Assembly (NCBI GenBank): GCA_002269645.1
Contig: NIVC01000074.1
Span: 62,001-126,000, forward strand
DNA length: 64,000 nt
From: Macrostomum lignano
Lineage: Eukaryota
Direction: 5' to 3'
The notes below the pieces were generated by a model. The model saw nothing but the letters and a program-made list of their open reading frames with translations. It did no database searches and was not told where the DNA came from. Of this stretch, positions 7,701 through 42,614 are shown in pieces (position 1 is the stretch's first letter; every line of letters begins with the position of its first letter). The translations under genes and the position numbers were made by a program.

Positions 7701-9006
7701 AAAACTTCATCATATTTCAATTTTTTGGTTTTTATTATCAACGATTACCAATTGCGGAAACATTACGACAAAGGAGCAAAGACTCCAAGGCGTACAGTGT
7801 AGATGCGATGGAGAACGGAGGGATTCTTTATTTGATGTTTTACAGCCACAACGCACAATGTAGGGTGACGCACTGCTGGGTGACAGCACAATGTAGGGTG
7901 ACGCACTGCTGGGTGACAGCACAATGTAGGGTGACGCACTGCTGGGTGACAGCACAATGTAGGGTGACGCACTGCTGGGTGACAGCACAATGTAGGGTGA
8001 CGCACTGCTGGTTGACAGCACAATGTAGGGTGACGCACTGCTGGGTGACAGCACAATGTAGGGTGACGCACTGCTGGGTGACAGCACAATGTAGGGTGAC
8101 GCACTGCTGGTTGACAGCACAATGTAGGGTGACGCACTGCTGGGTGACAGCACAATGTAGTGTGACGCACTGCTGGGTGTCAAAGCTACGCAGTGTCATT
8201 CAGGCCCGCCTTGCCCAGACAACCACAGCCACAGCAGCCGCGGAAGCAGTGCCAGCAGGGCTCGAAGGTTCCATATACGAGCGTTGGAGCGTAGTTCTGT
8301 CTAAACAAAGCTATAAGGCCAGATCAAAACTCGTGTCCAATCAGAATTGTTGAATGGAAAGCCAATCAGAAAACTCGTGTCCAATCAGAATTGTTGAATG
8401 GAAAGCCAATCAGAAAACTCGTGTCCAATCAGAATTGTTGAATGGAAAGCCAATCAGAAAACTCGTGTCCAATCAGAATTGTTGAATGGAAAGCCAATCA
8501 GAAAGCGAGTGGTCTGAAACGTGAGCGCAAAATTGGTAGAGTACAACACAGTTTAGACGCAACGGTCGATAACAAATAACATCCATATGGTTGGAACAAA
8601 GGAGCTTCAAAAACGCCAAATCTATCGTCAAAAATCACTTTACGAAGTCCCAGACATGCTCGACGGGGTTCATCGCTGCATCTGCCTTAATTTTTGTCTT
8701 TACAGTTCCACTCAACAATCTGGCCAATGCTGCAAAGTCAGATTGCCAGCTTCATGACGGCAGAGTGCGAAGTCAATGCGACCCACCTGGCGCTGTGCTG
8801 CTCCCGAGATGCCGCAGATTTCGGCAAGCCGAGAGGAGAGATCAAACCGACTGGAGTGAGACTAAACAGGAGCAGCGTAGAGCGAAACTGTGACGGATCG
8901 CTGCATTTCACTTTTGGTGTAGTCGCTACTGACAGCAGTAGTAGCTTATGCGAATTATCGTTGACTGCTGCCGCTAAGGCTGCCGGAGCAGGTGCATCAT
9001 CGGGAA
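4412..9006 (+). CDS. CAP-A: secreted CAP/SCP (venom allergen-like) protein + Cys hinge + 2 EGF-like + conserved unknown domain; exons 4412-4615, 4736-5079, 5193-5338, 5416-5529, 7415-7644, 8706-9006; terminal exon not resolved
   Basis: Hydrophobic N-terminus; HNNFRE..PTARAMNFV; QWFSE; HYANIMSSELTQIGCGVSRC..FLTVCLY; YKTGRPCSECP..C..DLC; EGF-like CQCNCQDAYGTGHLC and CLNGG..CTCICPDGFSGQRCE. All junctions GT-AG with phases 0,2,1,1,0,1. Confidence 0.85.
4635..4713. repeat. (CTGC)n/(CTGT)n microsatellite in CAP-A intron 1
   Basis: Directly visible. Confidence 0.95.
5576..7385. repeat. Intronic minisatellite, 21-bp unit CTAGCTACTGACAGTCTCCAT
   Basis: About 1.8 kb tandem array in CAP-A intron 4; source of the spurious RLSVARW ORFs. 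Confidence 0.97.
7850..8180. repeat. Intronic minisatellite, 33-bp unit CACAATGTAGGGTGACGCACTGCTGGGTGACAG
   Basis: About 10 tandem copies in CAP-A intron 5. Confidence 0.95.
8327..8504. repeat. 44-bp tandem repeat (4 copies), each with two CCAATCAG motifs
   Basis: AAACTCGTGTCCAATCAGAATTGTTGAATGGAAAGCCAATCAGA, period 44. Confidence 0.9.
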
Positions 9007-9067
9007 GTGAGTTGTAATTTTTTTAAATTTGAAATTTTTGAAAATTTTGAAAGAAAATGATTTTAGT

Positions 9068-9270
9068 ATGAAGTGTCGGAGATAGAAGTGTCGGAGATAT
9101 GAAGAGTCGGAGATATGAAGTGTCGGAGATATGAAATGTCGGAGATATGAATTGTCGGAGATATGAAGTGTCGGAGATATGAAGTGTCGGAGATATGAAG
9201 TGTCGGAGATTTGAAGTGTCGGAGATGTGAAGTGTCGGATATATGAAGTGTCGGAGATATGAAGTGTCAG
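9068..9270. repeat. 16-bp minisatellite GAAGTGTCGGAGATAT
   Basis: About 12 copies starting ~60 bp after the CAP-A exon 6 donor. Confidence 0.95.
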
Positions 9271-9534
9271 AGACCCAAGTGAAAACCGTTCTTTTGCTTT
9301 AGCTGTGTTGCTAGAGACAAACTTTATTTTTGCAACAACACTGTCTGGAAGCATTGATCAAAATGTCACTTCACGTTAATGTCCTCTGATTAATGACCAG
9401 TCATTGACTGTAAGACAAACGGCAATTTTAATTTAAAGGGCAAACCAGACAAACGAAGCAACAATTTATTTTAAACTAATTATGGTAAAGTCCTATGAAG
9501 TCATATTAAGCTTCATGTCATCAGCTGTCTTATT

Positions 9535-10560
9535 TATCAAACGAATTTGCATTCGGAGAAGGTGCAGTTGTTAAAGCTAAACTTCGCCGTCGCCAGATTT
9601 TCCTGATTAACGCCGGTGATTTGCGTGTTTGACACCACATTGACATTCAGCTCACTGGCCCCAGAATCGCTTGGTCCTACGTGTCCAGCCTGGTCACATT
9701 TAACTTCTTCTTCTTTAGTTTGCAGTGCCAATGCCGACGTCACAGCATAGCTGCTCGCTTGCAGAGATCGGTCCCAACGTTTTGTAAGTTGACACCGCGA
9801 TTCTGCTTCGTTGAATATGTGGGACTTCCGTTCGCAGAGTTTGCCAGTGGCTGTGGAAATAAATGGTTATCCTTGGTTTCAACTGGTAGAAGGTCTAGAT
9901 ACCGTCGTACCTTTTCAGTATCGTAAATCCTTGCCTGCTTGTTGTCGGGTTTTGCTTTACTTCTCACTGGATCCGCGGACTTATTCTTAGACGGAAGAGA
10001 CATCTCGTCGTGTCAGATGCTGCAGGTGCTCTTGGCCTCTTTCGCCCAAGCAATAAAGGACATAAAACAGAAATTTGTCCTGCTCTGCCACTGCCGTACC
10101 TCCCTCAAAGTAGCATGCGAGCTTTTGCATATCACCAGTCTCCAATCTCGATGTTTATGGCCTCCAATTTCGGCCATAGACAACTGCTTCACCAATGTTA
10201 TCTGCGGTACTGGCCATAGACATGAAGTGTACGCATCGATATTTTATTTCCCGCCTTTTCACCCATAGACAATTCAATCAATGCAGCTATACTATGAAGC
10301 ACGAATTCAAGTTAATGACCAAGGGCACGAGTGCGCGTAGTCATACGTTATATTAACCTACCATTAACTAAAAACTCATGCTTTTTACAGCAACGGCAAA
10401 GTACATTCCGCTCTCCTACCTGCTCCCCGCGGTGAAGAAGCGACATAGAGGACTCAATGGTCAGTTGCTTTCCCATAAGCGAGGCGTTGTCATTCAGAGC
10501 ATTGATCCAGCCAAAGAGCCTGACGTGCACGATTTCAATAGGAACAGCTCGAAGACTGCA
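9535..10560 (-). mobile_element. Degenerate Crypton-like (DUF3504 / tyrosine-recombinase-type) transposon remnant
   Basis: Frameshifted minus-strand fragments PLCRFF, GGHKHRDWRL, RRYLDLLPVETKDNHLFPQPL..YSTKQNRGVNLQNVGTDLCKRA and QAGH resemble, in the correct order, DUF3504-family motifs recalled from memory (F..R..G..Y; GLRG..EHR; YL..LP..FY.RP..WYS..P.G.N.L..M..LC..AG; GH). Confidence 0.5.
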
Positions 10561-11113
10561 GGAGACACTGGCGGGCAGTGCTTGAAGCCGGTGCAAAGTC
10601 GCAGTCAGGCATTGACAGCACCTGGCACTGTCATCGCGTGTACACTTGCATGCACCCTCTCTGCATCATTTTTTCTAAATTTTGTTCGCATCTTTTTTTA
10701 GTGCATCAGAAGACTATGTAGGCGGCTCTACTACGTAGTGAGAAACTTTTGCATGTGCGCAAAGCAGAATTGAGTAAAAATTTCTCGGCAAAATATACGA
10801 GCGTGCATCTACGCCACTAAACGCTGTTATGAAATACAGTTCCTGGCCTACTGAACTGATATAGTTAGGGCAATTTATTATTTGGGGATTGTGTGCACAA
10901 ACATGGGCCTAGGGGAGGGCCTAGGGGAGGACTTTAAATTAGTCAGAATTAGTCAGTCAGAAATTAGTCAGCTCGTAAGTTTCATCAATTCTAGGAAAGC
11001 CGTAAAATTTGACAATTCTTCTCATTTTAACACAAGCAGCAATAGAAAGTGTATTAAATTGTACGCTGTTTATTCTGTTTCAGTAGGAAATAAAATTCGA
11101 CATCAGAGTCGCA

Positions 11114-14100
11114 TCATTTTGTTAGCAATACGGACAGCAATGCTGTAATAAAATTAATAAATGGTGCAACCTTTAGCCTGGAAGAGTACGACTTCTCAGT
11201 AATATCACTTTTCCTATCAATACAGTCTGTAATGTTAGAATTGTCAACGTCATTGCGACTAGATCTAGCGGCATAAGACGTCCATATCCATCCGTAGTCC
11301 TTGCCAAAATCTGCTCGAGATTCCAAGAAATCAATGGCTCCAATGGCAACGCCTTGAGGCAAAGATTCGTCAATTTCCCGCTTGTACTGCTGTACAGCCA
11401 GTCGGATAACCGCAGAGCGGACGAACTTTGCTGGTTGCGCTGGCGTGGAAAATTGTTTACGAATTATGGATATTATGGATTTTATATTGATTGTATTTTC
11501 GGCAGTTCAGCTAAATAGCTAAGCAATGTGAGTGGCGATTTAGCAACGTGTGAAGAAACCACGAGAATGCAAAATTTCAGTCACCAGTAGTCGTGGCATT
11601 AGGGCGCATTCAGGAGCTCACATTTTTCTTTAACTGAGCTTTAGCACCGGGGGCTTTAGCACCGGGGGCTTTAGTACCGGGGGCTTTAGTACCGGGGCTT
11701 TAGCACCGGGGGCTTTAGCACCGGGGGCTTTAGCACCGGGGGCTTTAGCACCGGGGGCTTTAGCACCGGGGGCTTTAGCACCGGGGGCTTTAGCACCGGG
11801 GGCTTTAGCACCGGGGGCTTTAGCACCGGAGGCTTTAGAACCAAGGGCTTTAGCAGTTGCCACTGTATCTGTTTCACTACCTCAGCAAGTAAAAAGCAGA
11901 GCAGCACTAATCACTCACCTCGATCAAGCAGCAGTTTACGCTTCTGTACTTTTAATTTTCCCACCGAGCACAGGGTGCTGCTACCCGCCGGCACGCCAAT
12001 GTAGATCAGCAGCTGCAGACCGCCGCCAGCAACCTGGTTGATGGTGCCCTGCAAATAATTGACGTCTTCCGGGCCAACATAAGATGCAGAACCAACCTCG
12101 ACCGTGTAGCTCCTGCCTGAGCAGCACAACTCATAATTGTAATGGTTTCGGCAGAACTTTGTAACGGCTTCGGCAACCGCTGAGCGGAACTTTAGATTCC
12201 AAATCTCCATGTGGAACTGTAGGTTGAAAATGATATGGGCTTACAGGCTTTCAGTTCTGGATGCATGTAAGTAGTCAGTTCCAAAAAATATTATGTTTCA
12301 CTTAGGTATACTGGCGCCACACTGTTTATACTAGCGCCACACTGTTTATAATAGCGCCACACTGTTTATACTGGCGCCACACTGTTTATACTGGCTCCAC
12401 ACTGTTTATACTAGCGCCACACTGTTCATACTAGCGCCACACTGTTTATACTGGCGCCACACTGTTTATACTGGCGCCAAACTGTTTACACTGGCGCCAC
12501 ACTGTTTATACTGGCGCCACACTGTTTATACTGGCGCCAAACTGTTTATACTGGCGCCAAACTGTTTGTACTGGCGCCACACTGTTTACACTGGCGCCAC
12601 ACTGTTTATACTGGCGCCACACTGTTTACACTGGCGCCACACTGTTTATACTGGCGCCACACTGTTCATACTGGCGCCACACTGTTTATACTAGCGCCAC
12701 ACTGTTTATACTGGCTCCACACTGTTTATACTGGCGCCACACTGTTTATAATAGCGCCACACTGTTTATATTGGCGCCACACTGTTTATACTGGCGCCAC
12801 ACTGTTGATACTAGCGCCACACTGTTTATACTAGCGCCACACTGTTTATACTGGCGCCACACTGTTTACACTGGCGCCACAAAACTTACCTGAGCTTTAG
12901 CGATCGGTGGCAAGACAACCAGGGGCCCCGATCTGAACCAGGCCGCCGACACAAATGTCAGTTTCACACTATTAACATGCAGAATAGCCGAGATTTCGCA
13001 GTATTTACCAACAAATTCGAGCGGACATAAACAGCCGCAGTGCACTTTTGCCGGGAATACAAATGCCAAGTAGTTGACGCCACTGTTCAGACACTTGGAA
13101 GACTTCATTGACTCGCACTCTTTGCAGGCTTCGATGGACGAGCCCTCTGCGGGTTAGCGTAAATTCAGGCCTTAATAGCTACACAGTGCTCACACAGGGT
13201 GTACAGTGCTCACACAGGGTGTTCAGTGCTCACACAGGGTGTTCAGTGTTTAAACAGGGTGTACAGTGCTCACACAGGGTGTACAGTGCTCACACAGGGT
13301 GTGAAGTGCTCACACAGGGTGTAAAGTGCTCACACAGGGTGTTCAGTGTCTAAACAGGGTATACAGTGCTCACACAGGGTGTAAAGTGCCCACACAGGGT
13401 GTTCAGTGTCTAAACAGGGTATACAGTGCTCACACAGGGTGTACAGTGCTCACACAGGGTGTACAGTGCTCACACAGGGTGTTCAGTGCTCACACAGGGT
13501 GTACAGTGCTCACACAGGGTGTACAGCACTCGACCAGGATGTACAATAACCTAATGTAACGTGTACGCAAACCCTACTGTATTAAAATTTTCTGTTAATT
13601 TTCCATTTTTTATAATTCATAATTGCACTGCGTTGAACCACCTCTATCAATAACCAAGGCGCTAAAAAATTAGAAAACTTACTCTCGCAGTATTTTCCAC
13701 TGTTTGAAGGATGGCAAAGACACTCGCATTTGTGAACTGCAGTCGAAAAAGTACTGATAGAAGAACTCATCACGGTGGCTGAAAAATCTGTCCTTAATGC
13801 ACAATTCCTGCAATCGATTCTGCAAGCTGCAACAGGTTAATTACGAGTTATACATGTACATGTATTGCATGATGGGCGGAACGCACTGAGTGCAAGGTAG
13901 ATAAGGGAAATGACAGAAATGAGTGCCAGGTAGATAAGGGAAAGGACAGAACTGAGTGCCGGGTAGATAAGGGAAAGGACAGAACTGAGTGCCAGGTAGA
14001 TAAGGGAAAGGACAGAAATGAGTGCCAGGTAGATAAGGGAAAGGACAGAAATGAGTGCCAGGTAGATAAGGGAAAGGACAGAACTGAGTGCCAGGTAGAT

Positions 14101-16035
14101 AAGGGAAAGGACAGAACTGAGTGCCAGGTAGATAAGGGAAAGGACAGAAATGAGTGCCAGGTAGATAAGGGAATTGTCGGGCAGAATGAGTGAACTTCAG
14201 CAGGCAGCGGATCAAAGTCTGACATTTGTTCTGAACAGAGTCCAGCTCGTCGTGCTCTGGTCCTTTAGCCAAGTTGCCAGACGCACACAGACCGCCGAAA
14301 CAGGCTGAAAACTTCGCAGGACAGTCGGAGCAACTGCAGCCAAACTGGTTTTCGAATGCTCTGAAGAAATGTTACATTTTTCAATTTTAGATAAATAGCT
14401 GATGAGAAACTTAAAGTATATAAAAATATATGAGATACATACATGTACATGTATATACAGTGTGATTTATGCACACCCAGTGTGATTTACTGTATGCACA
14501 CCCAGTGTGATTTATGCACACCCAGTGTGATTTATGCACACCCAGTGTGATTTATGTACACCTTGTGTGATTTATGTACGCCCTGTGTGATTTATGTACG
14601 CCCGGTGTTATTAAGTACACCTTGTGTGATTTATGTACACACTGTGTGATTTATGCACACCCAGTGTGATTTATGTACACCCTGTGTGATTTATATGTAC
14701 ACCCAGTATGATTTATGTACACTCTGTGTGATTATGTACACCCTGTGTGATTTATGTACACCTAGTGTGATTTATGTACGCCCAGTGTGATTTATGTACA
14801 TCCAATGTGATTAATGTACACCCAGTGTGATTTATGTACATCCGATGTGATTAATGTATACCCAATGTGATTTATATACATCCAATGTGATTAATGTACA
14901 CCCAGTGTGATTTATGCACATCCAGTGTGATTTATGTACACCCAGAGTGATTTATGTACACCCAGTGTGATTTATGTACACCCAGTGTGATTTATGCACA
15001 CCCAGTGTGATTTATGAACACCCAGTGTGATTTATGTACGCCCTGTGCGATTTATGTACACCCAGTGTGATTATGTACACCCATTTGTGATAAATGTACC
15101 CCCATTTGATAACTGTACACCCATGTGAAAACTGAAGCCTGTGTAAGCTCTGCGGGTTAAGCCATAGGTGTTAAATTTCTTACATTCCTGCAGCCTTGCT
15201 GTAACCGCACACAACCATGCGAGTGCTATCTTTACAGTCGGTGAAACCGCAGCCAATGACACTCTGCGATTGTCGCATCATGTTAGAATAATTTCTGGTC
15301 GAACAACCTGGCTTTGGAATCCAGTTATCTTGCTGGCTAATGTTGAAGTGGCTCTTCTCCGCGTACCAGTGCAATATGACATTCTCTGGGCTGGCCGTAG
15401 CTTTTGATCCTTTGTACATGTTGAAGTCGTGTCCGTCAAGTTTGGGATAAAGTTTGCTGATATTAACACTGAGATTGCAGTGCTGGCTGATTTGGCTAGC
15501 AAAGTCCGCTATCGACTGGTTCCACTCCTGGGTTCAAGAGATCAAAGGTTCAAGAGTTCATGAGTTCAGAATTTCATGAGTTCGAGTTTGAGTTCAAGAT
15601 TTCACGAGTTCACGAGTTCAAGAGCTCAAGAGTTCACGAGTTCAAGAGTTCACGAGTTCAAGACTTCACGAGTTCAAGACTTCACGAGTTCACGAGTTCA
15701 TGAGTTCACGAGTTCAAGACTTCACGAGTTCAAGAGTTCAAGACTTCACGAGTTCAAGAGCTCATGGGTTTAGGAGTTCATGAGTTTTATGACACGAGTT
15801 TTATGACACGAGTGAGCAGGCTAGTGAGTAGCAGCTACTCAACTTCTCAAAGTTCAGCCAGCCAACTCACCAAAAGCAGCATGGCTCTGGCAGTAGGAAA
15901 AATCGCCTGTCTCAGCCGATTGTGAGTCACCACAAATGCTAACTTGTCTTTCTCAGAGATAGAGGCTAGAACCGGACTCAAACAGCAATTAAACACTGTC
16001 AAAAGGCAGCAAAAGATGTGTGCCTGATGCTGCAT
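11114..16035 (-). CDS. CAP-B: complete 7-exon CAP/SCP + hinge + 2 EGF-like + conserved unknown domain + GPI-type tail; exons 16035-15871, 15527-15184, 14360-14224, 13826-13683, 13146-12890, 12216-11919, 11439-11114
   Basis: Signal peptide MQHQAHIFCCLLTVFNCCLSPVLA; HNRLRQAIFPTARAMLLL|EWNQSIADFA; HWYAE; IGCGFTDC..MVVCGY; CSDCPAKFSACFGGLC; CECLCHPSNSGKYCE; CLNSG..CGCLCPLEFVGKYCE; FHMEIW..KFCRNHYNYELCC; C-terminus KVAPFINFITALLSVLLTK*. All six introns GT-AG, phases 0,2,1,1,0,1, frame continuous to stop. Confidence 0.88.
11638..11852. repeat. 15-bp minisatellite TTTAGCACCGGGGGC (CAP-B intron 6)
   Basis: About 14 copies. Confidence 0.95.
12308..12880. repeat. 20-bp minisatellite CTGGCGCCACACTGTTTATA (CAP-B intron 5)
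   Basis: About 28 copies, starting 9 nt from the exon 5 donor. Confidence 0.97.
13180..13530. repeat. 20-bp minisatellite ACAGTGCTCACACAGGGTGT (CAP-B intron 4)
   Basis: About 17 copies. Confidence 0.95.
13885..14175. repeat. 33-bp minisatellite GAGTGCCAGGTAGATAAGGGAAAGGACAGAAAT (CAP-B intron 3)
   Basis: About 9 copies. Confidence 0.95.
14458..15085. repeat. 20-bp minisatellite CACCCAGTGTGATTTATGTA (CAP-B intron 2)
   Basis: About 30 diverged copies. Confidence 0.95.
15531..15790. repeat. 8-bp-based repeat GAGTTCAC/GAGTTCAA (CAP-B intron 1)
   Basis: Directly visible; abuts the exon 2 acceptor. Confidence 0.9.
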
Positions 16036-16178
16036 TTATTGTCTGTTGAATCATTGAACGAAACTATTTTCTTTACGGTTGACCAGAGAATATCGAGCGC
16101 TCGATATTCCCTGCGGTTGACTTAAGCAACACCCAAATTGAACTATTGCAGTTCGTTTAAAATCTAAATCTATAATTC

Positions 16179-18135: not shown

Positions 18136-18174
18136 CCGATGCATTTCGTCCATTGCATTAGGACATCGTCAGGG
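18136..18174 (-). ncRNA. Minimal type I hammerhead ribozyme motif (PLE pLTR copy 1)
   Basis: Minus strand reads CC-CUGACGA-U-GUCC-uaaugcaau-GGAC-GAA-AUGCAU-C-GG: catalytic core, 4-bp stem II, palindromic stem III, AUC cleavage triplet. Confidence 0.75.
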
Positions 18175-18362
18175 TCTTTTTATTTAAGAAACAATTTGAA
18201 CGAATATTCAGTATATATAGATAGTTGAGAGTAACAAGAGTAGTTGAATTGAGTTTTTAATTGATGGTTTAAAACTTGTACATAGTAATCAATTTTTTGA
18301 TGCAGTATTGGTTGGGTAAAGTGCATATCAGTTTCAAGCCAGTCCGGTCATTGACAAATCAG

Positions 18363-18737
18363 CTAAAAAATTCTGAGTTGACGGCTAGCCCCACCCATCG
18401 CAAGTTGGTTATTTAACGTGGGCTGTTTGGTCTTAATGTACAGGGCTTCTAATAGGCAGAGCATGTGATCTCTATTACAAAAATCAATAGCCTTTATCAT
18501 TTCGTGCGGTTCAGCCTCACAACAGGAATTGCAGGTTAGCAGGTGTTCGTTAATAGCAGAGTTTTTTAGCCAGTGCTCTCTGACCCTCGTGTATAAGTGT
18601 CGTTTAGTTTTTCCTATGTAGGAGATGCTCTGGTCCTCAGAGCAAACAAATTTATACTCGACACCAGCCGCGAGAGGACGTGGAACAATGGATTTCAACT
18701 TGCAGACAAACTTAGCAATCTTTTCGGTGCGAAACAA
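18363..18737 (-). pseudogene. GIY-YIG endonuclease fragment of a Penelope-like element (RT domain missing)
   Basis: GIY-YIG motifs as above; upstream sequence replaced by the inverted pLTR. Confidence 0.85.
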
Positions 18738-18865
18738 AACACGGATTTGAGTGTTTAAGTCTTTACGTAGTTTTTAAACCATCAATTAAAAACTCGATTC
18801 AACTACTCTTGTTACTCTCAACTACCTATATATACTGAATATTCGTTCAAATTGTTTCTTAAATA

Positions 18866-32200: not shown

Positions 32201-35200
32201 GGATCAGTGTCTAATCAGTGCTTGTATCAGTGTCTAATCAGTGCTTGGATCAGTGTCTAATCAGTGCTTGGATCAGTGTCTAATCAGTGCTTGGATCAGT
32301 GTCTAATCAGTGCTTGGATCAGTGTCTCATCAGTGCTTGGACCAGTGTCTAATCAGTGCTTGGATCAGTGTCTAATCAGTGCTTGTACCAGTGTCTAATC
32401 AGTGCTTGGATCAGTGTCTAATCAGTGCTTGGACCAGTGTCTAATCAGTGCTTGGACCAGTGTCTAATCAGTGCTTGGATCAGTGTCTAATCAGTGCTTG
32501 GATCAGTGTCTAATCAGTGCTTGGACCAGTGTCTAATCAGTGCTTGGATCAGTGTCTAATCAGTGCTTGGATCAGTGTCTAATCAGTGCTTGGATCAGTG
32601 TCTCATCAGTGCTTGGATCAGTGTCTAATCAGTGCTTGGATCAGTGTCTCATCAGTGCTTGGATCAGTGTCTAATCAGTGCTTGGATCAGTGTCTCATCA
32701 GTGCTTGGACCAGTGTCTAATCAGTGCTTGGATCAGTGTCTAATCAGTGCTTGGATCAGTGTCTCATCAGTGCTTGGATCAGTGTCTAATCAGTGCTTAT
32801 TTTATCAGATCATGATATAATCAGTGCTTGGACCAGTGTCTAATCAGTGCTTGGATCAGTGTCTAATCAGTGCTTGGATCAGTGTCTAATCAGTGCTTGG
32901 ATCAGTGTCTAATCAGTGCTTGGATCAGTGTCTAATCAGTGCTTGGATCAGTGTCTAATAAGTGGTGGGATCAGTGTCTCATCAGTGCTTGGATCAGTGT
33001 CTAATCAGTGATTGTATCAGTGTCTAATCAGTGCTTGGATCAGTGTCTAATCAGTGCTTGGATCAGTGTCTAATCAGTGCTTGGATCAGTGTCTCATCAG
33101 TGCTTGGATCAGTGTCTAATCAGTGCTTGGACCAGTGTCTAATCAGTGCTTGGACCAGTGTCTCATCAGTGCTTGGATCAGTGTCTAATCAGTGCTTGAA
33201 CCAGTGTCTAATCAGTGCTTGGACCAGTTTCTAATCAGTGCTTGGATCAGTGTCTAATCAGTGCTTGGACCAGTGTCTAATCAGTGCTTGGATCAGTGTC
33301 TAATCAGTGCTTGGATCAGTGTCTAATCAGTGCTTGGATCAGTGTCTAATCAGTGCTTGGACCAGTGTCTAATCAGTGCTTGGATCAGTGTCTAATCAGT
33401 GCTTGGACCAGTGTCTAATCAGTGCTTGGATCAGTGTCTAATCAGTGCTTGGATCAGTGTCTAATCAGTGCTTGGACCAGTGTCTAATCAGTGCTTGGAT
33501 CAGTGTCTAATCAGTGCTTGGATCATGTTGTGTTCTAGTTGATTGATTAAATTCAATTCAGTTGGAGACACTTGAGTCTCGCTCAATATATTTATACTCA
33601 TGTGCACGTTGAAAACAGTGTTACGCAATCGAAACAACGATACCATGATTGAACGCACGATGCATATAAGGTAATTGAACAATTCTAGCCTCAAAGTTAG
33701 TTAGTTACAACACCTAGGCCCGATGCACAGTCACTACATTCTCCCCCTTCCGGAAGAGGATAACGCGCCGGTTGCCGTCGAGCTCGAGTTGACCTTCGAA
33801 GCTCAGGTGGAGGTGGCGGCTCGCCCGTCCGTGGGGGCGGAGCCGGCGGCAGCGGCAAATCGAACCAGTCGTCCTCTTGGTCGGCCGCGCCGTTGTCAGC
33901 CGGTGGGCTGTTGCACTTAACCAGCCGACTCGCTTGCCACTTTGTACCGTCGGACAGCACGAAGGTGTTGCGCCCTGCTTTGGAGGCGATCTTTAGCGGT
34001 TCCTTCAGTCGGGTCGCCAGCTTGTGCGCTCGGTGCGGCGTCTGTCGCCAGACCCAGTCTCCGGCCTGGAGCGTAGAGTCACGAGCCCGCCTTCGCTTGT
34101 TGGTGTAGTCGGCGTTCTTGGCTTGCCTCTCAATGATAGCGTCGCGCAGATCGCTGTCGTCCCGCTGTTGCACTGGAGTTGGCCTGAGCAGCTGCAGTCC
34201 GGACCGCAGCTTGCGCCCGATCATCAGCTCGGCTGGAGTCAGCCCGGTGAGAGCGTGCTGGCTGGTCCTGTAGGTCTTGAGCACCAGGTCGATGGCGTCC
34301 TCGAACTTCGCTCCCGCCCTCAGGTTCGCTGCCAGGCCCTCCTTCAGACTCCGGTTGAATCGCTCAACTCCGCCGTTGCCTTGCGGGTAGTACCGGCTCA
34401 CTCGGCTGTGCTTGATGCCCTCGGCTCGCAGGAACTCTTCGAACTCGTCGCTGACGAACTGGGGTCCGTTGTCGCTGATCAGCATCTTCGGGACTCCCAC
34501 CGGCCGAATAGCTTCCGAAGCGTCTTGATGATGTTGGCAGAGGTGACGGTTTCCATGGCTGCAATCTCCGGCCACTTGCTGTACAGGTCGTGGATCACCA
34601 GTAGAAACCGCTGGTGTCGAGGAGCCGCGGCGACCTCGCCGAAGATGTCGATCTCGACCTTGTCCCACGGTCCATCTGGCCACTCGATTGGTGTCACGAT
34701 CGTCTGTTGAGGCTTGCCGGACTTCTCCGCCAGAGTGCAGGCCGTGCAGTTCTTGACGTAGTCCTCCACCTGCCGGTCAATTCCAGGAAACCAGACCGTG
34801 TCGCGGCACCGCTGCTTTGACCGAACGACGCCCGGATGCCCTTCGTGGGCCTCCTCGATGACTTGAAGTCGCAGGCTCGTCGGGATGATCGCGCGTTCAC
34901 CACGACCGAGGCACTGACCGTTGTTCCAGCAGAACAGCTCGTCCCGGACGTTGAAGTACGGCTTTAGAGAGCTGTCCACCTTCGTTGGCCAGCCGCCCGA
35001 GATGTACTGCAAAACCGCCTGCAGCACTTCGTCCTCCTTGGTCGCCGTTGCCAGTGCGTCTGCCGTCAGCGTTGTCTTCGAGTCGACGACTGCGTAGACG
35101 TAGCCCTCCTCGTCGGTCTCCTCGGCTGGAACGCGCTCCGTCGTGGCCCATCTGGACAGCATGTCCGCGCACTTGTTGTCAGCGCCAGGGATGTGCTCAA

Positions 35201-38200
35201 ACCGGACGTCGTAGCCGCGAAGTCTCTCGACCCATCGATGAATGCGAAGAGGCCTGTGCCCCATGCCTTTCGAGTCGAGCAGAGTTGTCAGGGCCTTGTG
35301 GTCGGTGCGCAGCGTTACTCGTCTGCCGTATAGATAGTAGTGCCAGCGTTCGATGCTCCATACACAGGCCAGGGCTTCTCGCTCTCCGGCTGAGTATCGC
35401 TTTTCCGCTGGGCTGAGTGCTCTCGATGCGAACGCGATTGGCACCTCTTTTTCGTTTTGTACTTGGCTGAGCACTGCCCCCAGTCCGTCTAGACTTGCAT
35501 CGCAGGTGACGTACGTCTCAGCTTGGCAGTCAAAATGAGCTAACACTGGGCTGCTGGTTACGGCTGACTTGAGTGTACGGAAGGCTGTACGTTCCCGCTC
35601 ACCCCAGTGCCAGTCCGCGTCCTTTTTGAGCAGTTGTCTCAGAGGCTCGGCAATTGCTGAGTAATGTGGTATGAACTTGTGCAAAAAGTTCACTGCCCCG
35701 AGAAACGATTGAATTTGCGCGACCGTTGATGGCTCAGGAATTCTTAGAATTGCGTCGACGTTGCACTTGGTCGGTTTGATGCCGTCTGCAGAGATGACCA
35801 ATCCGAAGAAATCCACGCTCGCCTGCCGGAATTTGCACTTCTCTCGATTGAGTGTGAAGCCTTCGCGATGAATCCGCCCTAGGACTTCTCGGAGGTTCTT
35901 GTCGTGCTCAGTCTCGTCCTTGCCGTGCACCAGGATGTCGTCCACGATGTTGATGGCGCCAGGAGCTCCTCGAAGCACCGTCTGCAGGGCTCGCTGGAAG
36001 GCAGCTCCGGAGCTAGATAGCCCGAATGGCACCACGGTGAACTGGTACAGGCCGGCATCGGTGATGAAGCACGTCAGTCCTCGAGAGTCTGGATGCAGCG
36101 GAATCTGCTGGTAGCCTTGACGCAGGTCCAGCTTGCTGAAGCACTTCGAGCCGTTGATGCTGGCCGATAGGTCCTCGATTGACGGTACCGGATAGCGGTC
36201 CGCGATCACCGCCTTGTTGACCTGCCGCAGATCCACGCAGAGACGAACCTTGTTGGACTCCTTCTTGCGCGTCACGACAACGTTGCTAACCCACTCGGAC
36301 GCGTCGACCTTCTCAATGATGCCCTGTTGCTCCATCCGGCTGATCTCTGACGTCACTTCGTCCTTCAGGCCGATCGGCAGCTTCCGCATTGGCTGAGACA
36401 CTGGCTTGACCGAGGCGTCGATCTTTGTCCGGTGAATGAAGCTCTTGGACCGGCCCAGACCGTCGAAGATTCCGGGGAAGTCGCGCTCGATCGTAGTCTC
36501 GCTGATGCTCATCACTCTGTTGTCACCTTGGAAGATTTTGAATCCGAGGGCCTGAAACAGGTCGCGGCCCAGGATGTTCGCTCCTTTGTCGGCGACGTAG
36601 AATGTGGCTTCTGTCCTGATGCCGTTGAACGTCACTGGAAGCTCGACCTTGCCGATGGTCTTGATCGCAGATCCGCCGTATGCCTCCAGTTTTGTGCTCG
36701 TCGGAAGCAGCGGGTGCCTAGCGAAGGACTTCTTGAACGTCTCCATGTTGAGCAACGAAACGGCAGCACCGCAGTCGATTTGCAGTCGAATCAGCTGTCC
36801 GCCCAGACGGCATTCGCAGAATAAGCTGTCTGTGCTCTTGTTGTTCACGGCCAGGACCGTCAGACTGGACTCTGCAGGCTCTTTGGTGTCGATCGCAGAG
36901 ACCGCTTTCATGCGGCACATTTTCGCGAAATGGTTCGTCTTGCCGCATCGTCTGCATTTCTGGCCCATCGCCTTGCATTCGCCCTTGTGTCCGTGGTTGC
37001 CTCCGCATCGAGTGCACTTTGGACCTGCTGCTGCGGTCTTCTCATGGCGAGCAGCTGGCTTCGGCTTCTTGCTCAGCGCCTTCACGTGGAGCTCTGGGCC
37101 GCTGACCTGCTTGGCATCTCTGATGGCTGCTTCGATTCGCTCAGCCTTCTTGATGGCGTCATCTAGCGTCAGATCGTCCTCCTCCATCAGGAGTCTTTCC
37201 CTAATGCGAGGTACGCAGGTTTTCTCCACAAGTTGGTCTCGAATTATTTCGTCGTGAAAGGTGCCAAATTTGCAGTTTGTTGCCAGTTCTCTCAGGGCCA
37301 TCACGTAGTCTCCGATGCTCTCGCCGTCGTGCTGGGCTCGCTGCCGAAAGGCGAAGCGCTCTGCTATGACGCTTCTCGACGAGCTGAAAATCGCCTTCAG
37401 TGCCGTTTTGGTCTCCTGAAGCGACTTGCTTGCATCGACGTTTGCAGCTCGGCGGCGTCCTTCCTCACCAAGCAGATGCAGGAGGATCGCCTTTTTCCGA
37501 CTCTCTGATGCCTCTTCGAGAGCTCCAGCTACCAGGAAGTTCTCAAATGACTTGATCCACCTTGCCCATGGCACAGGAGGTTCGCCTGGTACTGGTTGAA
37601 ACTCCGCTGGGTACGGGAGTCCGCTCGTCGCCATTTGTTGTGTTCTAGTTGATTGATTAAATTCAATTCAGTTGGAGACACTTGAGTCTCGCTCAATATA
37701 TTTATACTCATGTGCACGTTGAAAACAGTGTTACGCAATCGAAACAACGATACCATGATTGAACGCACGATGCATATAAGGTAATTGAACAATTCTAGCC
37801 TCAAAGTTAGTTAGTTACAACACCTAGGCCCGATGCACAGTCACTACAGATCAGTGTCTAATCAGTGCTTGGATCAGTGTCTAATGAGTGCTTGGATCAG
37901 TGTCTAATCAGTGCTTGGATCAGTGTTTAATCAGTGCTTGGATCAGTGTCTAATCAGTGCTTGGACCAGTGTCTAATCAGTGCTTGGATCAGTGTCTAAT
38001 CAGTGCTTGGATCAGTGTCTAATCAGTGCTTGGATCAGTGTCTAATCAGTGCTTGGATCAGTGTCTAATCAGTGCTTGGATCAGTGTTTAATCAGTGCTT
38101 GGATCAGTGTCTAATCAGTGCTTGGATCAGTGTCTAATCAGTGCTTGAAACAGTGTCTAATCAGTGCTTGGATCAGTGTCTAATCAGTGCTTGGATCAGT

Positions 38201-41200
38201 GTCTAATCAGTGCTTGGATCAGTGTCTAATCAGTGCTTGGATCAGTGTCTAATCAGTGCTTGGATCAGTGTCTAATCAGTGCTTGGACCAGTGTCTAATC
38301 AGTGCTTGGATCAGTGTCTAATCAGTGCTTGGATCAGTGTCTCATCAGTGCTTGGACCAGTGTCTAATCAGTGCTTGGATCAGTGTCTCATCAGTGCTTG
38401 GATCAGTGTCTAATCAATGCTTGGATCAGTGTCTCATCAGTGCTTGGACCAGTGTCTAATCAGTGCTTGGACCAGTGTCTAATCAGTGCTTGAACCAGTG
38501 TCTAATCAGTGCTTGGATCAGTGTCTAATCAGTGCTTGGACCAGTGTCTAATCAGTGCTTGGATCAGTGTCTAATCAGTGCTTGGACCAGTGTCTAATCA
38601 GTGCTTGGATCAGTGTCTAATCTGCCTCCAACTAACCTACTTAGATATGGAGAGAACACCTGGCCCAATACGCGGAGAGGGAGGCAAACGAACTGTGCTA
38701 CATTGTGCACCAGACTGACACGGTCTGGTATATAAAAATGGGCGACTCTTGGCTAAGCTACCAGACAACAGAGAACGTGCTGCCCACCGCCTGGCAGATT
38801 GTGGACGCTTGGCACTCTACCGGACGAAGCTACCGTAGTACGGGCGCCTGCTCAGGCGAAAACACGAACTGCCAACCATATCTGCAGATCATGAGCGACA
38901 AATTGGATAGTCTCGGCTGCGCTTATTATCTTTGTCATGGAGTGCACACTTTTGTGTGCTATTATTCGCATAAGTTAGCTGGGGAGAAGTACTTCTTGAT
39001 TGTGGCTTGGCCTCAGTGTTTTTGGTTGGCAATGTTGATATTGGATTAGGATGATTTAAGGTTGGGTATAAGAAGTTAGGGGTTTTCGTAGGTGGTTGAC
39101 GTGTCTTAGGGGTGAGGGTTGGCGTGTTTTATAGGGGTTGGCGTGTTTTATAGGGGTTGGCGTCTTTTATGGGTTTGGCGTGTTTTTTGGGGGCGGGGGT
39201 CGTCGTGTTTTATACGAGCTGGTGCTGATGTGTTTCATAAGGTTTGGCGTGTTGTGTGGCTTTGGTGTGTTACGCCGGGGTTTTGTGTGTCTTATGGGAT
39301 TTGGTACGGGTGGTGTTTTTTATCGGCGTTGGCATGTTTTATAGGTTGTGTTTTACCGTGAGTTGACGTATTTTTTGGGGCAGGCGGCGTTTATTCATAG
39401 GTATTGTGAATTTACTATTTTTATATTTTTGATGAGTGATTCATGCAATTTGTTCATATTTACAAACTTTAATTACTTTAATTACTTTAGGGCCGCAGTG
39501 CATGGCAGTCGGGTCTACGCCGTAGGCGAGCCGTGCAGCGCCTGTCCCAACAGCTTGCCACTCTGCTTGAACAATCTGTGCATCGATAAAATGATAGTCA
39601 GAGACCCGACGGTACCGGTTTACAAAGGATCCGACTCTAGCCAGAGACCATGTAAGAATTTGTTTGCTTATCTTGTGATATAGTCCATCCGGAATCGCCA
39701 AGAAAACATGCTCAACACCACATAAAACACGCCAACCAACACGCGCACGCCAAACCCTCCCCCAACACGTGCAATTATGTCACCCCAGCTCCTCCCACAC
39801 GCGCACGCCAACCTTTCCCCCAACACGCGCACGCCAACCCCTCCCCCAACACGTGCAATTAAGTCACCCCAGCATGCCAACCCCTCCCCCAACATGTGCA
39901 AGTCACCCTTCTCCAACACGCGCACGACAATCCCTCCTCCAACACGCACACGCCAACCCCTCCCCGAACACGCGCAAGTCGACGCTTTCACTAAACAAAC
40001 ACACCAAAATTACCTAAAGCACCTAATTCGAAGTATAAAAATCGCCATAGTAGCGAAGGGCTTATTGGGTTAGCATAGTTTAAGGCTTGGTATGATTTTT
40101 AAAAGACGGTGTTTCATGGGTGGTTGGCGTTTATTATGGTTTTTGGTGTGCTTTATGGTGAGTTGTTGTGTTTTATTTATGGGGTTTAGCGTGTTGTATG
40201 GGTTTGGTGTTTGGGGGGTTGGTGTGTTGTATCGTGATTGGCGTGTTTCATATGGACGTTTGGCGTTTTACAGTGCGTTGACGTATTGTATGATGGGGCA
40301 GACGGCGTGTGTTGCTGGCCGAGCAACTGAGGATGAGGATCTGAGAGGCATGTACATGTACGTACCAGTTTCTCTAACATGTATATTCCATGCGTAACCG
40401 GCAGTCTGCACAAGAGACTGCGAAACCTGTGAGCAGCGTCTCATCGGTCAGTGTCGTAGATGCGACTGCAGCAACGGCGGCACCCGTCGGCCGGAGGCGA
40501 CGCCATCGAATTGCAGGTGCACCTGTCCGATCGGATACTTCGGCCGGCAGTGCCAGGTGACTTTGGCCCGGTATAAAAACAGCGTTGCGCTGCGACTGGG
40601 GGTGCGCGGGCCTGGCAAGCTGTCCATGTCGCTGGTGAGTTTACTTGGGCTTATTTTCTATTATTTTCTATTATTTTCTATTATTTTCTATTTTTTTATT
40701 TATTAGTTCGAGTGAGCCCATAATTTAGCATGCATAATGCATAGCCACCGTTTAGCTGGTACATTTAACTAATTCGGTTTGGTACCTCAAGATCTGAGAA
40801 ACTGACGATCTGAAAGGGGGAAGTGGCCCAGCAACTGAGGATGGAGTTGGGAGGCTGGCCCAGCAACGAGGATGGAGTTGGGAGGCTGGCCCAGCAACTG
40901 ACACTTTGGGAGGCTGGCCCAGTAACTAACACTCTGGGAGGCTGGCCCAGCAACTGAGGATGGAGTTGGGAGGCTGGCCCAGCAACTGACACTCTGGGAG
41001 GCTGGCCCAGTAACCAACACTCTGGGAGGCTGGCCTAGCAACTAAGGATCTGGGAAGGCCCAGCAACTGAGGATCTGGGAGGCTGACGATTGCCCAGTCT
41101 TATATATATGAATGTATATAAGTAGCAAATATTTTAATATTTATTTTAATCTCGTATGAGTTTCGAGTCTATACATAAAGAACTGCATGGCTTCTAACTC

Positions 41201-42614
41201 TCACGCCTGCCTACACAGTTTCACTCGGTGCTGTGGAGAAGTCTTCAGACCCTTCTATCGTTGTCGGTGAACAGCTTCTGCAGAAGCCACGCGAGTCGCT
41301 ACAAAATGTGCTGCCCAGACAAGAGTTACAGTTCCTTAGTATCCACCTCGACCGCTAAGTTTGTAGATACAAACTGGTTCATACAGGAACCGGATCTGCT
41401 TCAGCAGAATCAGAACGGCGAACTTATGGTGTACGTCCGGGCGGCTATGGTCAGTGCAATACAGGACCCTGTGCTCTGCTACCATTCGGATAAGCTGAAC
41501 CCGAAGACCAATCCGCCAAGCTGTGAGGAGTTGAAAGTTAAATTTCTGCTATTTTCTTGATTGTTGATTTAAAGATCAATGAGTATTAAGCGGCTTACTT
41601 AGAAGTCAAGGGGCATGGCGGCTCATTTAGAGATTAACGGGTATGTGGCCGGTTAATTAAAGGATCAAGAAGAGGATTACCTGTTGAAGACATTACACAG
41701 TGACTAGAATCGCAATTCGACGGAGAGGCGACCTACTGTTGAGTCACAAGCGTACATGTATTACGTGAGTTGTAGATTTGCAAGAGTCGCGAAATGTTTG
41801 TTTAAGAGTCGTCGTGTTGTATTGGCGCATAACTTACTTTCTGCTAACTCAAGCAGACGAAACGGAATTGTTATAGATGCGAAATGTGATTCTACAATAA
41901 TGCATACAGTGACGCAGATGCGCTTTAGAAGCAACTCCTGTGATCCTACAGTGACTCCAGTCTCCAGCACGCCATAGATACGACTCCAAGCCCATAGTCA
42001 CTTGGGTCGCCCCAGTCGCAGACAATAAAACGCCTCAAATTTACTCTTAGGCGACACTTTGACGACTAACCCCGCGACTTGTACCGTGATGCCCTCGTAT
42101 CTTGTCGTTTTAGAGTCGTCTAGAGACACATCTTTACCATTTTACGTATGTCATGTTACCTGGAACGACTCTGGGGCGACGCAAGTGACTCCAGGACGCA
42201 ATTTTGGCTAGGTACCGTTTTCATCGGATCGGGGTCCGCATTCTTATACATGAACTCTCGTTTTAAAAGAACACCGGGTTACCTTAATATAAAAAAACAA
42301 TTTCTTTAATTAAGTAAAACCTTGTAAAAATTGCATTCTAAATAAAGTTGCACAACCCATACCGTACTACAGCGGACAAAGACCCGGAGCACATTCCTCC
42401 CTATCTGATTCAAGAGGCCATTCGGAGTAGTAAAAGCTGGATCAATGAGCAGCTGTCTGCGTGTTGTGAGAACGCAGTTATAAAAGAATTTCATGTACTG
42501 GCAATCGTAACCGCTGGAGGGCCGAGAACTACAGGTGGCAACACAGGTACCGGATGGATGCGATCCATGGCCATGGCTGTAGTAACAGGATTAGTCACAT
42601 TTCTTTATATGTAA
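20242..42614 (+). CDS. CAP-C: 6-exon CAP/SCP + hinge + 1 EGF-like + conserved unknown domain + GPI/TM tail; exons 20242-20412, 38645-38973, 39491-39651, 40405-40634, 41219-41522, 42373-42614
   Basis: Signal peptide; HNRFRELAYPTASRMLYL|IWREHLAQYAE; DAWHS; YLQIMSDKLDSLGCAYYLC..FVCYY; YAVGEPCSACP..CLNNLC; CSNGG..CRCTCPIGYFGRQC; FHSVLW..SFCRSHASRYKMCC; tail SMAMAVVTGLVTFLYM*. Junctions GT-AG, phases 0,2,1,0,1. The start could be Met 20257. Confidence 0.82.
20430..33525. repeat. 23-bp satellite (ATCAGTGTCTA + ATCAGTGCTTGG), left arm, in CAP-C intron 1
   Basis: About 13.1 kb tandem array; monomer is a dimer of related 11- and 12-bp subunits. Confidence 0.99.
33697..34500 (-). CDS. Integrase catalytic core and C-terminus, separated from Pol by a 1-nt frameshift at ~34496-34498
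   Basis: PKMLISDNGPQFVS..YPQGNGGVERFNRSLK..YRTSQHALTGLTPAELMIGRKLR; adding one G to the run at 34496-34498 gives LFGRWGVPKMLISDNG. Confidence 0.9.
   Translation of the reverse strand: MGVPKMLISDNGPQFVSDEFEEFLRAEGIKHSRVSRYYPQGNGGVERFNRSLKEGLAANLRAGAKFEDAIDLVLKTYRTSQHALTGLTPAELMIGRKLRSGLQLLRPTPVQQRDDSDLRDAIIERQAKNADYTNKRRRARDSTLQAGDWVWRQTPHRAHKLATRLKEPLKIASKAGRNTFVLSDGTKWQASRLVKCNSPPADNGAADQEDDWFDLPLPPAPPPRTGEPPPPPELRRSTRARRQPARYPLPEGGECSDCASGLGVVTN
34479..37634 (-). CDS. Gag-Pol polyprotein (gag with two CCHC knuckles, aspartic protease, RT, RNase H, integrase N-terminal part)
   Basis: CTRCGGNH..C and CRRCGKTNH..C; LQIDCGAAVS; LCVDLRQVN, KLDLRQGYQQ, PFGLSSSG, IVDDILVHG; TCDAS..GLGAVL, YSAGEREALA, TDHKAL; H..H..C..C zinc finger; IDIFG. 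Confidence 0.95.
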   Translation of the reverse strand: MATSGLPYPAEFQPVPGEPPVPWARWIKSFENFLVAGALEEASESRKKAILLHLLGEEGRRRAANVDASKSLQETKTALKAIFSSSRSVIAERFAFRQRAQHDGESIGDYVMALRELATNCKFGTFHDEIIRDQLVEKTCVPRIRERLLMEEDDLTLDDAIKKAERIEAAIRDAKQVSGPELHVKALSKKPKPAARHEKTAAAGPKCTRCGGNHGHKGECKAMGQKCRRCGKTNHFAKMCRMKAVSAIDTKEPAESSLTVLAVNNKSTDSLFCECRLGGQLIRLQIDCGAAVSLLNMETFKKSFARHPLLPTSTKLEAYGGSAIKTIGKVELPVTFNGIRTEATFYVADKGANILGRDLFQALGFKIFQGDNRVMSISETTIERDFPGIFDGLGRSKSFIHRTKIDASVKPVSQPMRKLPIGLKDEVTSEISRMEQQGIIEKVDASEWVSNVVVTRKKESNKVRLCVDLRQVNKAVIADRYPVPSIEDLSASINGSKCFSKLDLRQGYQQIPLHPDSRGLTCFITDAGLYQFTVVPFGLSSSGAAFQRALQTVLRGAPGAINIVDDILVHGKDETEHDKNLREVLGRIHREGFTLNREKCKFRQASVDFFGLVISADGIKPTKCNVDAILRIPEPSTVAQIQSFLGAVNFLHKFIPHYSAIAEPLRQLLKKDADWHWGERERTAFRTLKSAVTSSPVLAHFDCQAETYVTCDASLDGLGAVLSQVQNEKEVPIAFASRALSPAEKRYSAGEREALACVWSIERWHYYLYGRRVTLRTDHKALTTLLDSKGMGHRPLRIHRWVERLRGYDVRFEHIPGADNKCADMLSRWATTERVPAEETDEEGYVYAVVDSKTTLTADALATATKEDEVLQAVLQYISGGWPTKVDSSLKPYFNVRDELFCWNNGQCLGRGERAIIPTSLRLQVIEEAHEGHPGVVRSKQRCRDTVWFPGIDRQVEDYVKNCTACTLAEKSGKPQQTIVTPIEWPDGPWDKVEIDIFGEVAAAPRHQRFLLVIHDLYSKWPEIAAMETVTSANIIKTLRKLFGRWESRRC
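37849..38622. repeat. 23-bp satellite, right arm
   Basis: Same unit; resumes in register after the TSD and ends just before the branch-point-like CTAAC and acceptor of CAP-C exon 2. Confidence 0.99.
39100..40300. repeat. Degenerate GT-rich / CA-rich repeats in alternating orientation in CAP-C introns 2 and 3
   Basis: GGTTGGCGTGTTTTAT-type units at ~39100-39400 and ~40100-40290; reverse-complement units (ATAAAACACGCCAACC, CCAACACGCGCACG) at ~39710-40010. Confidence 0.75.
40824..41090. repeat. 28-32-bp minisatellite GGGAGGCTGGCCCAGCAACTGA.. (CAP-C intron 4)
   Basis: About 8 variable copies. Confidence 0.9.
41996..42190. mobile_element. Possible small MITE in CAP-C intron 5
   Basis: AGTCACTTGGGTCGCCCCAG versus CTGGGGCGACGCAAGTGACT, 20-bp inverted repeat with 1 mismatch. 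Confidence 0.4.

Follow-up and report, generated by a model that had tools for sequence, protein, structure and literature searches.

Three paralogous genes, here called A, B and C, are clustered on contig NIVC01000074.1 of the Macrostomum lignano assembly GCA_002269645.1. They lie within a window of 64,000 nucleotides (positions 62,001 to 126,000 of the forward strand), which is the whole stretch of DNA analysed here and to which all positions refer. The genes encode membrane-tethered CAP/EGF-like proteins, and each protein carries, between its last EGF-like module and a hydrophobic C-terminal tail, a Cys-containing domain that is unnamed in Pfam and that probably forms a membrane-proximal stalk of the SEA/MAD class. 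The genes are arranged as follows:

About 4.3-10.7 kb of the window, + strand: gene A, convergent with gene B
16.0-11.1 kb of the window, - strand: gene B, convergent with gene A
20242-42614, + strand: gene C, the third CAP/EGF-like paralog

The order of modules is the same in A, B and C: a signal-peptide-like N-terminus, a CAP/SCP domain, a Cys-rich hinge-like stretch, EGF-like modules, the SEA-like domain and the hydrophobic tail. With the Pfam CAP model (PF00188, cutoff 21.1 bits) the database proteins P0002 (paralog C) and P0005 (paralog B) scored 38.8 and 44.5 bits, P0007 and P0009, two relatives described below, 47.8 and 59.7, and the N-terminally truncated models of A 24.4 (P0003) and 20.6 (P0004). 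The modules upstream of the domain stayed below the cutoffs of the Pfam EGF-type hidden Markov models (HMMs; EGF E=0.022, EGF_C8A_B_C6 1.7e-3 to 3.5e-3), and their cysteine spacing, judged by eye, is EGF-like (C-x-C-x-C-P-x-G-[FY]-x-G-x-x-C). Right after CAP there is a stretch with the pattern P-C-S-x-C-P ... C ... L-C (5155-5388 in A, 14294-14359 in B and 39474-39650 in C), for which the Pfam search gave zero matches in the three proteins and which we take to resemble the CRISP "hinge".

The hydrophobic tail starts about 15-55 residues after the fourth strand of the domain and ends the protein, with at most one residue beyond it (the final Lys of B). The mean Kyte-Doolittle hydrophobicity of its last 20 residues is 1.2-1.6 (1.58 in A). 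These tails may be read as glycosylphosphatidylinositol (GPI) attachment signals. As predicted from the protein sequences, the SEA-like domain is the last extracellular module, next to the membrane anchor, in A, B and C and also in a homolog from the nemertean Tubulanus polymorphus.

An initial annotation of this DNA had proposed a segment of about 150 amino acids common to the three paralogs. BLASTP and an HMM built without C agree that all three share it, while its length had to be corrected to ~165-175 amino acids, spread over three exons. Strand 1 is encoded together with the last EGF-like module, helix 1 and strands 2 and 3 form an exon of their own (the FH exon, after its first residues), and helix 2 and strand 4 are in the last exon. 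The motif of the first strand, N-S-[VI]-x-[LM], still belongs to the EGF exon upstream, at its 3' end, so the domain of A starts before 8706. The codon and splice-site layout places a phase-0 intron straight before F-H in A, B and C, as the initial annotation had it, and a phase-1 intron past the fourth Cys. All three copies of the FH exon have a CAG/AG acceptor and a GTGAG donor, the six flanking introns are all GT..AG, and intron positions and phases are identical among the paralogs. The parts of the domain are:

7546..7644, + strand: A, part 1, from the last EGF Cys to beta1 (NNSISMSLKSV) and linker, with a GTAATT donor at 7645; HMM positions 1-37, E=3.9e-6
8706..9006, + strand: A, FH exon, with alpha1 (FHSTIW), C-x9-CC, a loop, the beta2-beta3 hairpin DGSLHFTFGVV and LC; HMM E=2.5e-35
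10391..10701, + strand: A, last exon, with alpha2 (TAKYIPLSYLLPAVKKRHRGL), beta4 (GVVIQSI), linker, putative GPI-type tail and stop; HMM positions 132-179, E=1.2e-10
12890..13000, - strand: B, part 1, with beta1 (VNSVKLTFV) and linker, closing the last EGF-like exon; HMM positions 1-37, E=2.9e-10
11919..12216, - strand: B, FH exon, with alpha1 (FHMEIW), C-x8-CC, beta2-beta3 (GGGLQLLIYIG), LC and the basic loop QKRK; HMM E=6.9e-42
11114..11439, - strand: B, last exon, with alpha2 (QPAKFVRSAVIRLAVQQYKREI), beta4 (GVAIGAIDF), a linker of ~55 amino acids, putative GPI-type tail and stop; HMM E=6.1e-9
40551..40634, + strand: C, part 1, with beta1 (KNSVALRLGV), whose N-S-V aligns with A and B, closing the last EGF-like exon
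41219..41522, + strand: C, FH exon, with alpha1 (FHSVLW), C-x9-CC, beta2-beta3 (NGELMVYVRA) and LC; HMM built without C, E=7.5e-12
42373..42614, + strand: C, last exon, with alpha2 (DPEHIPPYLIQEAIRSSKSWINEQL), a second CC, beta4 (AVIKEFHVLAIV), putative GPI-type tail and stop; HMM E=8.5e-4, splice confirmed by P0001

The splice leading into the last exon of A is confirmed by the database models P0003 and P0004, and the NCBI gene model ends at about 10701. A six-frame motif search recovered every peptide quoted in the initial annotation where it had been placed. On the + strand these are FHSTIW (8706), ECEVNATHLALCC (8763) and DGSLHFTFGV (8892) in A, and FHSVLW (41219), FCRSHASRYKMCC (41276), NGELMVYVRA (41414) and DPEHIPPYLIQEAI (42381) in C; on the minus strand they are FHMEIW (12216), FCRNHYNYELCC (12156), GGGLQLLIYI (12027) and QPAKFVRSAVIRLAV (11437) in B. 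The position given for FHMEIW was right and its strand had been left unstated: gene B is on the minus strand, and the + strand translation at this point is nonsense. The last-exon motif does occur in B and C as described, but it is not limited to them, since A has TTAKYIPLSYLLPAV in the exon from 10391 (P0003/P0004). The FH...W hexamer by itself is unspecific, with chance occurrences at 40246 and 54384, and the evidence must therefore come from the whole segment.

Comparison of the segments from the FH exon to the C-terminus by BLASTP gave E-values of 2e-7 for B and C, 5e-5 for A and C and 5e-5 for A and B. An HMM built from A, B and three relatives from outside the window, leaving out C, was searched against all 2005 open reading frames (ORFs) of the window. 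It detected the FH exon of C at 7.5e-12 and its last exon at 8.5e-4, at colinear profile positions, and the short part 1 of C (40551..40634) scored nothing alone. The exon pieces of A and B matched profile positions 1-37, 37-136 and 132-179 in order, and no fourth copy of the domain was found among these ORFs. Judged from these sequence comparisons, the segments of A, B and C clearly represent homologous copies of one extracellular, membrane-proximal domain. Pairwise identity across the domain is only 21-23%, which points to an old duplication rather than a recent tandem one.

Several of the public gene models depart from this exon structure. P0001, a model of gene C, uses an internal acceptor (FIQ|EPDLL) in the exon 41219-41522, by which C loses its CC motif and helix 1. 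In P0002, also of gene C, the FH exon is missing and the last exon (42373-42614) is read out of frame. P0003 and P0004 splice off the hydrophobic tail of A (10391-10701), and the NCBI model reads through to it.

The domain sequences of A, B and C gave nothing in Pfam-A (2025 copy) at E<=10, SEA (PF01390) included, in agreement with the initial annotation, which did not recognise it as one of the domains named in Pfam. Five relatives (P0005, P0007, P0008, P0009 and P0013), some of them complete and some partial, showed only CAP, sub-threshold EGF-type and chance-level matches in Pfam-A, and none to SEA. Two sub-threshold matches were dismissed. One was to GPR128_N, where EGF and beta1 meet in P0004 (E=0.099; 13 bits, with the cutoff at 27), and the other was to Baculo_PEP_N in P0008 (E=0.01), likewise under its cutoff. 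When profiles were searched against the sequences of all PDB chains, the matches were at chance level only (E of 0.14 or more), and PRPP synthetase (0.14), a coronavirus replicase domain (E=0.41) and an Rh protein (1.7) were discarded as such.

Word-indexed searches of 5.8 billion proteins returned M. lignano gene models only, while a HMMER profile search of 1.84 billion cluster representatives (E<=1e-3) returned seven proteins. Of these, P0001 and P0004 to P0008, six in all, come from M. lignano as models or paralogs, and the seventh is P0009, an uncharacterised protein of T. polymorphus (XP_074644855). Thus no confident match to a known unrelated domain emerged from Pfam-A, the PDB profiles or HMMER. 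CAP and EGF-like modules precede the domain in all relatives whose N-terminus is present; P0001 is truncated and retains an EGF-like module only. At HMMER sensitivity, the domain is a sequence family unnamed in Pfam and found only in M. lignano and one nemertean. A literature search for these Macrostomum genes found nothing relevant.

The Tubulanus gene (OZ123228.1 10496221-10513251, our locus L002, gene at 2001-15031 of the locus) shares the exon structure of the flatworm genes. A phase-0 intron immediately precedes W-Q-N-S-M-L-W, matching in position and phase the M. lignano intron ahead of F-H-x-x-x-W, and a phase-1 intron lies in the same loop between strand 3 and helix 2, 2-4 residues from the flatworm position. 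An extra phase-2 intron is present in the loop between helix 1 and strand 2. The protein has additional EGF-like modules and a mucin-like stretch, rich in Thr, with TGTNVTTGTTT repeats. Its C-terminus is not of the GPI type: a true transmembrane helix lies about 20 residues past strand 4 and is followed by a cytoplasmic tail of about 45 amino acids. Four isoforms were found, differing in the Thr-rich part.

A six-sequence alignment of A, B, C, P0007, P0008 and the Tubulanus protein (identities 14-29%) has as invariant positions the Trp of helix 1, the Cys that ends helix 1, a CC 8-9 residues on, the L-C after strand 3 and an Ala in helix 2. The turn between strands 2 and 3 is conserved as [GN]-x-L, the hairpin reading DGSL in A, GGGL in B, NG-EL in C, DNSL in P0007, VGLL in P0008 and GNGL in Tubulanus; only in A does Ser follow the turn Gly. 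Just ahead of the last strand, C (LSACCENAV, 42460-42470), P0007, P0008 and Tubulanus have a second CC, which is absent at the aligned sites of A (about 10490) and B (about 11340). This distribution suggests that the second CC is ancestral and was lost in A and B. With this loss, A and B would have one disulfide fewer, or a repaired pairing, among the remaining four Cys.

The loop between strand 3 and helix 2 carries a basic cluster at the same position in B (QKRK), P0008 (RRRR) and Tubulanus (GRRR), and the cluster is absent in A, C and P0007. An internal duplication of the domain, as (beta-alpha-beta) x 2, was considered on account of the helix-then-CC pattern that occurs twice and of a MAFFT misalignment; hhalign of the N-terminal against the C-terminal half gave a probability of 3.3%, and the idea is unsupported.

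Structures of A and B were predicted with AlphaFold2 from alignments of five rows that had only the A and B rows in common and that are shallow because the family is small. For A the mean predicted local distance difference test score (pLDDT) is 65 and the predicted template modelling score (pTM) 0.60, with strands (E) and helices (H) at E11-18, H30-57, E84-93, E99-107, H141-161 and E166-173. For B the values are 72.5 and 0.74, with E12-18, H32-60, E89-99, E103-111, H145-162 and E167-174, the core elements having a pLDDT of 80-92 and the core blocks reaching 85-92. Both models have the order beta-alpha-beta-beta-alpha-beta, that is, the predicted elements follow the ferredoxin-like sandwich order expected of SEA. 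Helix 1 is followed by a long loop, modelled with low confidence, that contains the CC motif, in agreement with the disulfide-rich insert suggested by the initial annotation; the basic loop is likewise modelled with low confidence.

Foldseek was run against the PDB, taking the top 50 matches per model, with TM-scores normalised to the target (TMt) or to the query (TMq). The leading matches are:

Nup54 ferredoxin-like domain, 5c2u: model A E=6.4e-4, TMt 0.54 (best single match); model B E=6.6e-2
ACE2 chains: model A from E=1.9e-3, ranks 2-3; model B E=1.9e-3 to 2.7e-2, at the top
PCDH15 EC9-MAD12, 6eet (6eet_A): model A E=4.4e-3, TMq 0.43; model B E=3.1e-2, TMq 0.40-0.43 overall
PCDH15 EC11-EL, 6c10: model A E=8.9e-3; also listed for model B
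PCDH15, 6bxz: among the best matches of both models
CDH23 EC25-MAD28, 8tri: model A E=1.5e-2; listed for model B, up to 0.2
CELSR1, 8vy2: model A E=8.4e-2; not among the top 50 of model B

In both lists generic ferredoxin-like proteins follow at E above 0.1. The domain MAD12 of PCDH15, also called the SEA, PICA or EL domain, mediates cis-dimerisation (PMC11212938), and the name "SEA" is applied to it in the literature (PMC11212938, PMC11527881). The neck of ACE2 (residues 616-726) is ferredoxin-like, lies between the peptidase domain and the transmembrane helix and contributes to dimerisation (PMC7164635). The matches suggest, weakly, that the closest structural neighbours of the A and B models belong to the divergent SEA/MAD class. 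A consistent fold with the same neighbours was thus obtained for A and B, and the SEA/ferredoxin-like fold next to EGF and an anchor, which the initial annotation had read from sequence patterns, stands as a prediction.

We consider it probable that the three segments are homologous copies of one membrane-proximal stalk domain, of the SEA/MAD class in fold, in CAP/EGF-like proteins, with a function that can be proposed by comparison. A number of points weigh against this. The fold is a prediction from five-row alignments, with long loops at a pLDDT below 50; the Foldseek E-values of the leading matches are marginal (6e-4 to 3e-2), and query-normalised TM-scores are only 0.30-0.43, with TMt up to 0.54. 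Since Foldseek gives no target coordinates, the ACE2 match is presumed to fall on the neck rather than on the peptidase domain. Zero classic SEA structures (MUC1, MUC16, enterokinase, agrin) are in the top 50 of either model, and the Pfam-A and PDB profile searches linked the domain at sequence level to none of the SEA, MAD and collectrin families. The GPI type of the anchor is putative, as are the disulfide pairing, dimerisation and the function of the domain. Furthermore, cleavage at the basic loop cannot be a general mechanism, given that A, C and P0007 lack this loop.

Three other explanations were weighed. One holds that the domain is a lineage-specific Cys-rich domain of independent origin, with a real fold that is not SEA-like, the AlphaFold2 models being default guesses and the Foldseek matches ferredoxin-like noise. 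The mean pLDDT of 65-72 from such small alignments would agree with this, as would the Foldseek E-values of 1e-3 to 1e-2, the unrelated ACT, MoaC, ribosomal protein S6 and BMC shell proteins that follow in the lists, and the missing sequence tie to any known family. However, two separate predictions with differing targets and alignments agree on the order of elements, which equals the order derived earlier from sequence alone. They also share top neighbours, most of which (PCDH15 MAD12, CDH23 MAD28, CELSR1, ACE2) are extracellular and have their ferredoxin-like domain beside the membrane, as in the position of the domain described here, and pTM reaches 0.74 for B; we regard this explanation as unlikely.

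Less likely still is a true, very divergent homolog of classic SEA (PF01390), with MUC1-like strain-driven self-cleavage in the beta2-beta3 hairpin and a force-separable, non-covalent heterodimer as its product. Such a homolog would share the topology, the position by EGF-like modules and the membrane, the mucin-like neighbourhood seen in Tubulanus and the small residue (G or N)-x-L kept at the beta2-beta3 turn, and D-G-S-L-H-F in paralog A resembles G|SVVV. The autoproteolysis motif G|S[VI]VV is present in many, but not all, SEA domains. Here it is not conserved: a nucleophilic Ser follows Gly only in A (G-S), while P0007 has N-S, B GGL, C G-EL and Tubulanus NGL, so self-cleavage of the SEA type is unlikely as a property of the family (for its mechanism, see PMC10327162). 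With the Pfam SEA HMM failing at E<=10 and the cleavage motif missing, we have not filed the domain as a member of PF01390, and the absence of canonical SEA structures from the Foldseek top 50 also speaks against this homology. On the predicted models, the domain can be called SEA-like by its fold class and its position, but not a member of Pfam SEA. It is scarcely credible, finally, that there is no autonomous domain at all and that a variable linker with a GPI signal looks alike merely through paralogy. The long, poorly conserved loops and the low identity among the paralogs would suit a linker, but W, C, CC and LC are invariant and the hydrophobic periodicity is kept between flatworm and nemertean, together with shared introns; moreover, the HMM is highly specific (7 matches in 1.84 billion proteins) and the core elements are predicted with the high pLDDT given above.

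In the preferred SEA/MAD-class explanation, the fold would be a two-layer ferredoxin-like sandwich of the kind found beside the membrane in many animal surface proteins. The additions specific to the family would be the Cys ending helix 1 with the CC 8-9 residues on, the invariant L-C after strand 3 and the second CC before strand 4. The probable role would be that of a disulfide-braced stalk holding the CAP and EGF-like modules off the membrane. By analogy with PCDH15 MAD12 and the ACE2 neck, the stalk may also dimerise in cis. In the members with a basic loop (B, P0008 and Tubulanus), the loop between strand 3 and helix 2 could expose a di- or tetrabasic site for a proprotein convertase. Such a cut would release the outer part of the protein or make it separable, analogous to what has been proposed for the MAD-like domain of PKHD1L1.

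A more far-reaching possibility, which we hold as doubtful, is that of a spiralian-restricted family (so far Platyhelminthes and Nemertea), SEA/MAD-like, with up to three family-specific disulfides, in which the basic loop would be a convertase-operated release switch of CAP proteins. If true, this would give the CAP superfamily an architecture (CAP, EGF-like, SEA-like, anchor) and a regulatory logic that have not been described for it.

The surroundings of the domain exons are rich in repeats. Intron 1 of gene C (20416-38644, about 18 kb) consists almost wholly of a 23-bp satellite with roughly 570 copies (consensus AATCAGTGCTTGGATCAGTGTCT; 20470-33525 and 37849-38622). A GC-rich retroelement on the - strand (34479-37634), with a 1051-amino-acid ORF containing RVT_1, RNase H and Integrase_H2C2, interrupts this satellite and thus appears to have been inserted into the array. 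Nearly every intron of genes A and B has its own, different minisatellite (periods of 15-44 bp, 4-86 copies), and several of them make long spurious open frames, for example 5611-7668. These intron minisatellites of A and B are at:

5577-7385
7853-8179
8326-8504
9067-9273
11638-11855
12307-12881
13183-13545
13887-14173
14458-15128

Between genes B and C there are two ORFs, at 18366-18773 and 18964-19365 (both on the - strand), one with a GIY-YIG nuclease domain (Pfam E=7.8e-7) and one with a transposase-type HTH_38/HTH_23 domain (E=1.1e-8), which are probably remnants of mobile elements. The first 2 kb of the window (1-2000) depart from the rest with a GC content of 0.59. The region of 46-52 kb (46000-52000) shows strong alternating AT and GC skews and tandem arrays, including (AGAC)n at 50794-51396.

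The domain family is outside Pfam (2025 copy) and has no sequence-detectable relative among solved structures. Surface-tethered members of the CAP/CRISP group have poorly understood ligands and functions, and we did not find the architecture of CAP, EGF-like modules, SEA-like stalk and membrane anchor described for the CAP/CRISP superfamily. The family extends the catalogue of divergent SEA/MAD juxtamembrane domains, which is relevant to mechanosensing, shedding and cis-dimerisation. The corrected exons are of practical use for annotating this model flatworm, as public models mis-splice the region in two of the three genes. Nothing is overturned by these results: SEA-like stalks are common in animal surface proteins, and one more will not surprise a specialist in such proteins.

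Several known systems resemble these proteins in part. Membrane-tethered CAP proteins include GPI-anchored CRISP-like sperm proteins, such as ascidian Urabin and mammalian GLIPR1L1, in which the CAP domain is likewise shown at the cell surface through a C-terminal anchor; to our knowledge, proteins of this type have not been described with EGF-like modules and a SEA-like stalk between CAP and anchor. The Nup54 ferredoxin-like domain (5c2u) belongs to an intracellular nucleoporin, lacks cysteines of this pattern and has an unrelated context. A 2017 paper by Pei and Grishin is said to group it with divergent SEA domains. The neck of ACE2 and collectrin (TMEM27) is similar in being a ferredoxin-like domain that directly joins the membrane to an ectodomain with enzymatic or ligand-binding activity (PMC7164635), with no sequence similarity to the domain described here and with different loops and Cys pattern.

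The MADs of PCDH15 (MAD12), CDH23 (MAD28) and CELSR1 share with it the predicted ferredoxin-like sandwich and the place as last folded module before the anchor. They differ in that no sequence similarity is detectable, the partners here are CAP and EGF-like modules instead of cadherin repeats, and the putative anchor in M. lignano is of the GPI type rather than a transmembrane helix; we also know of no C-x8/9-CC ... LC ... (CC) signature in MADs. With classic SEA (PF01390; MUC1, enterokinase, agrin, transmembrane mucins) it has in common the secondary-structure order, the small residue at the beta2-beta3 turn and a setting close to EGF-like modules and the membrane, and in Tubulanus also to mucin-like sequence, while the extra cysteines, predicted to form disulfides, and the long loops set it apart. 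By its predicted fold and its position the domain appears to resemble the divergent SEA/MAD class, a resemblance rather than a homology demonstrated by sequence. It is best regarded as new at the level of sequence family, while the structural and positional kind to which it belongs is known.

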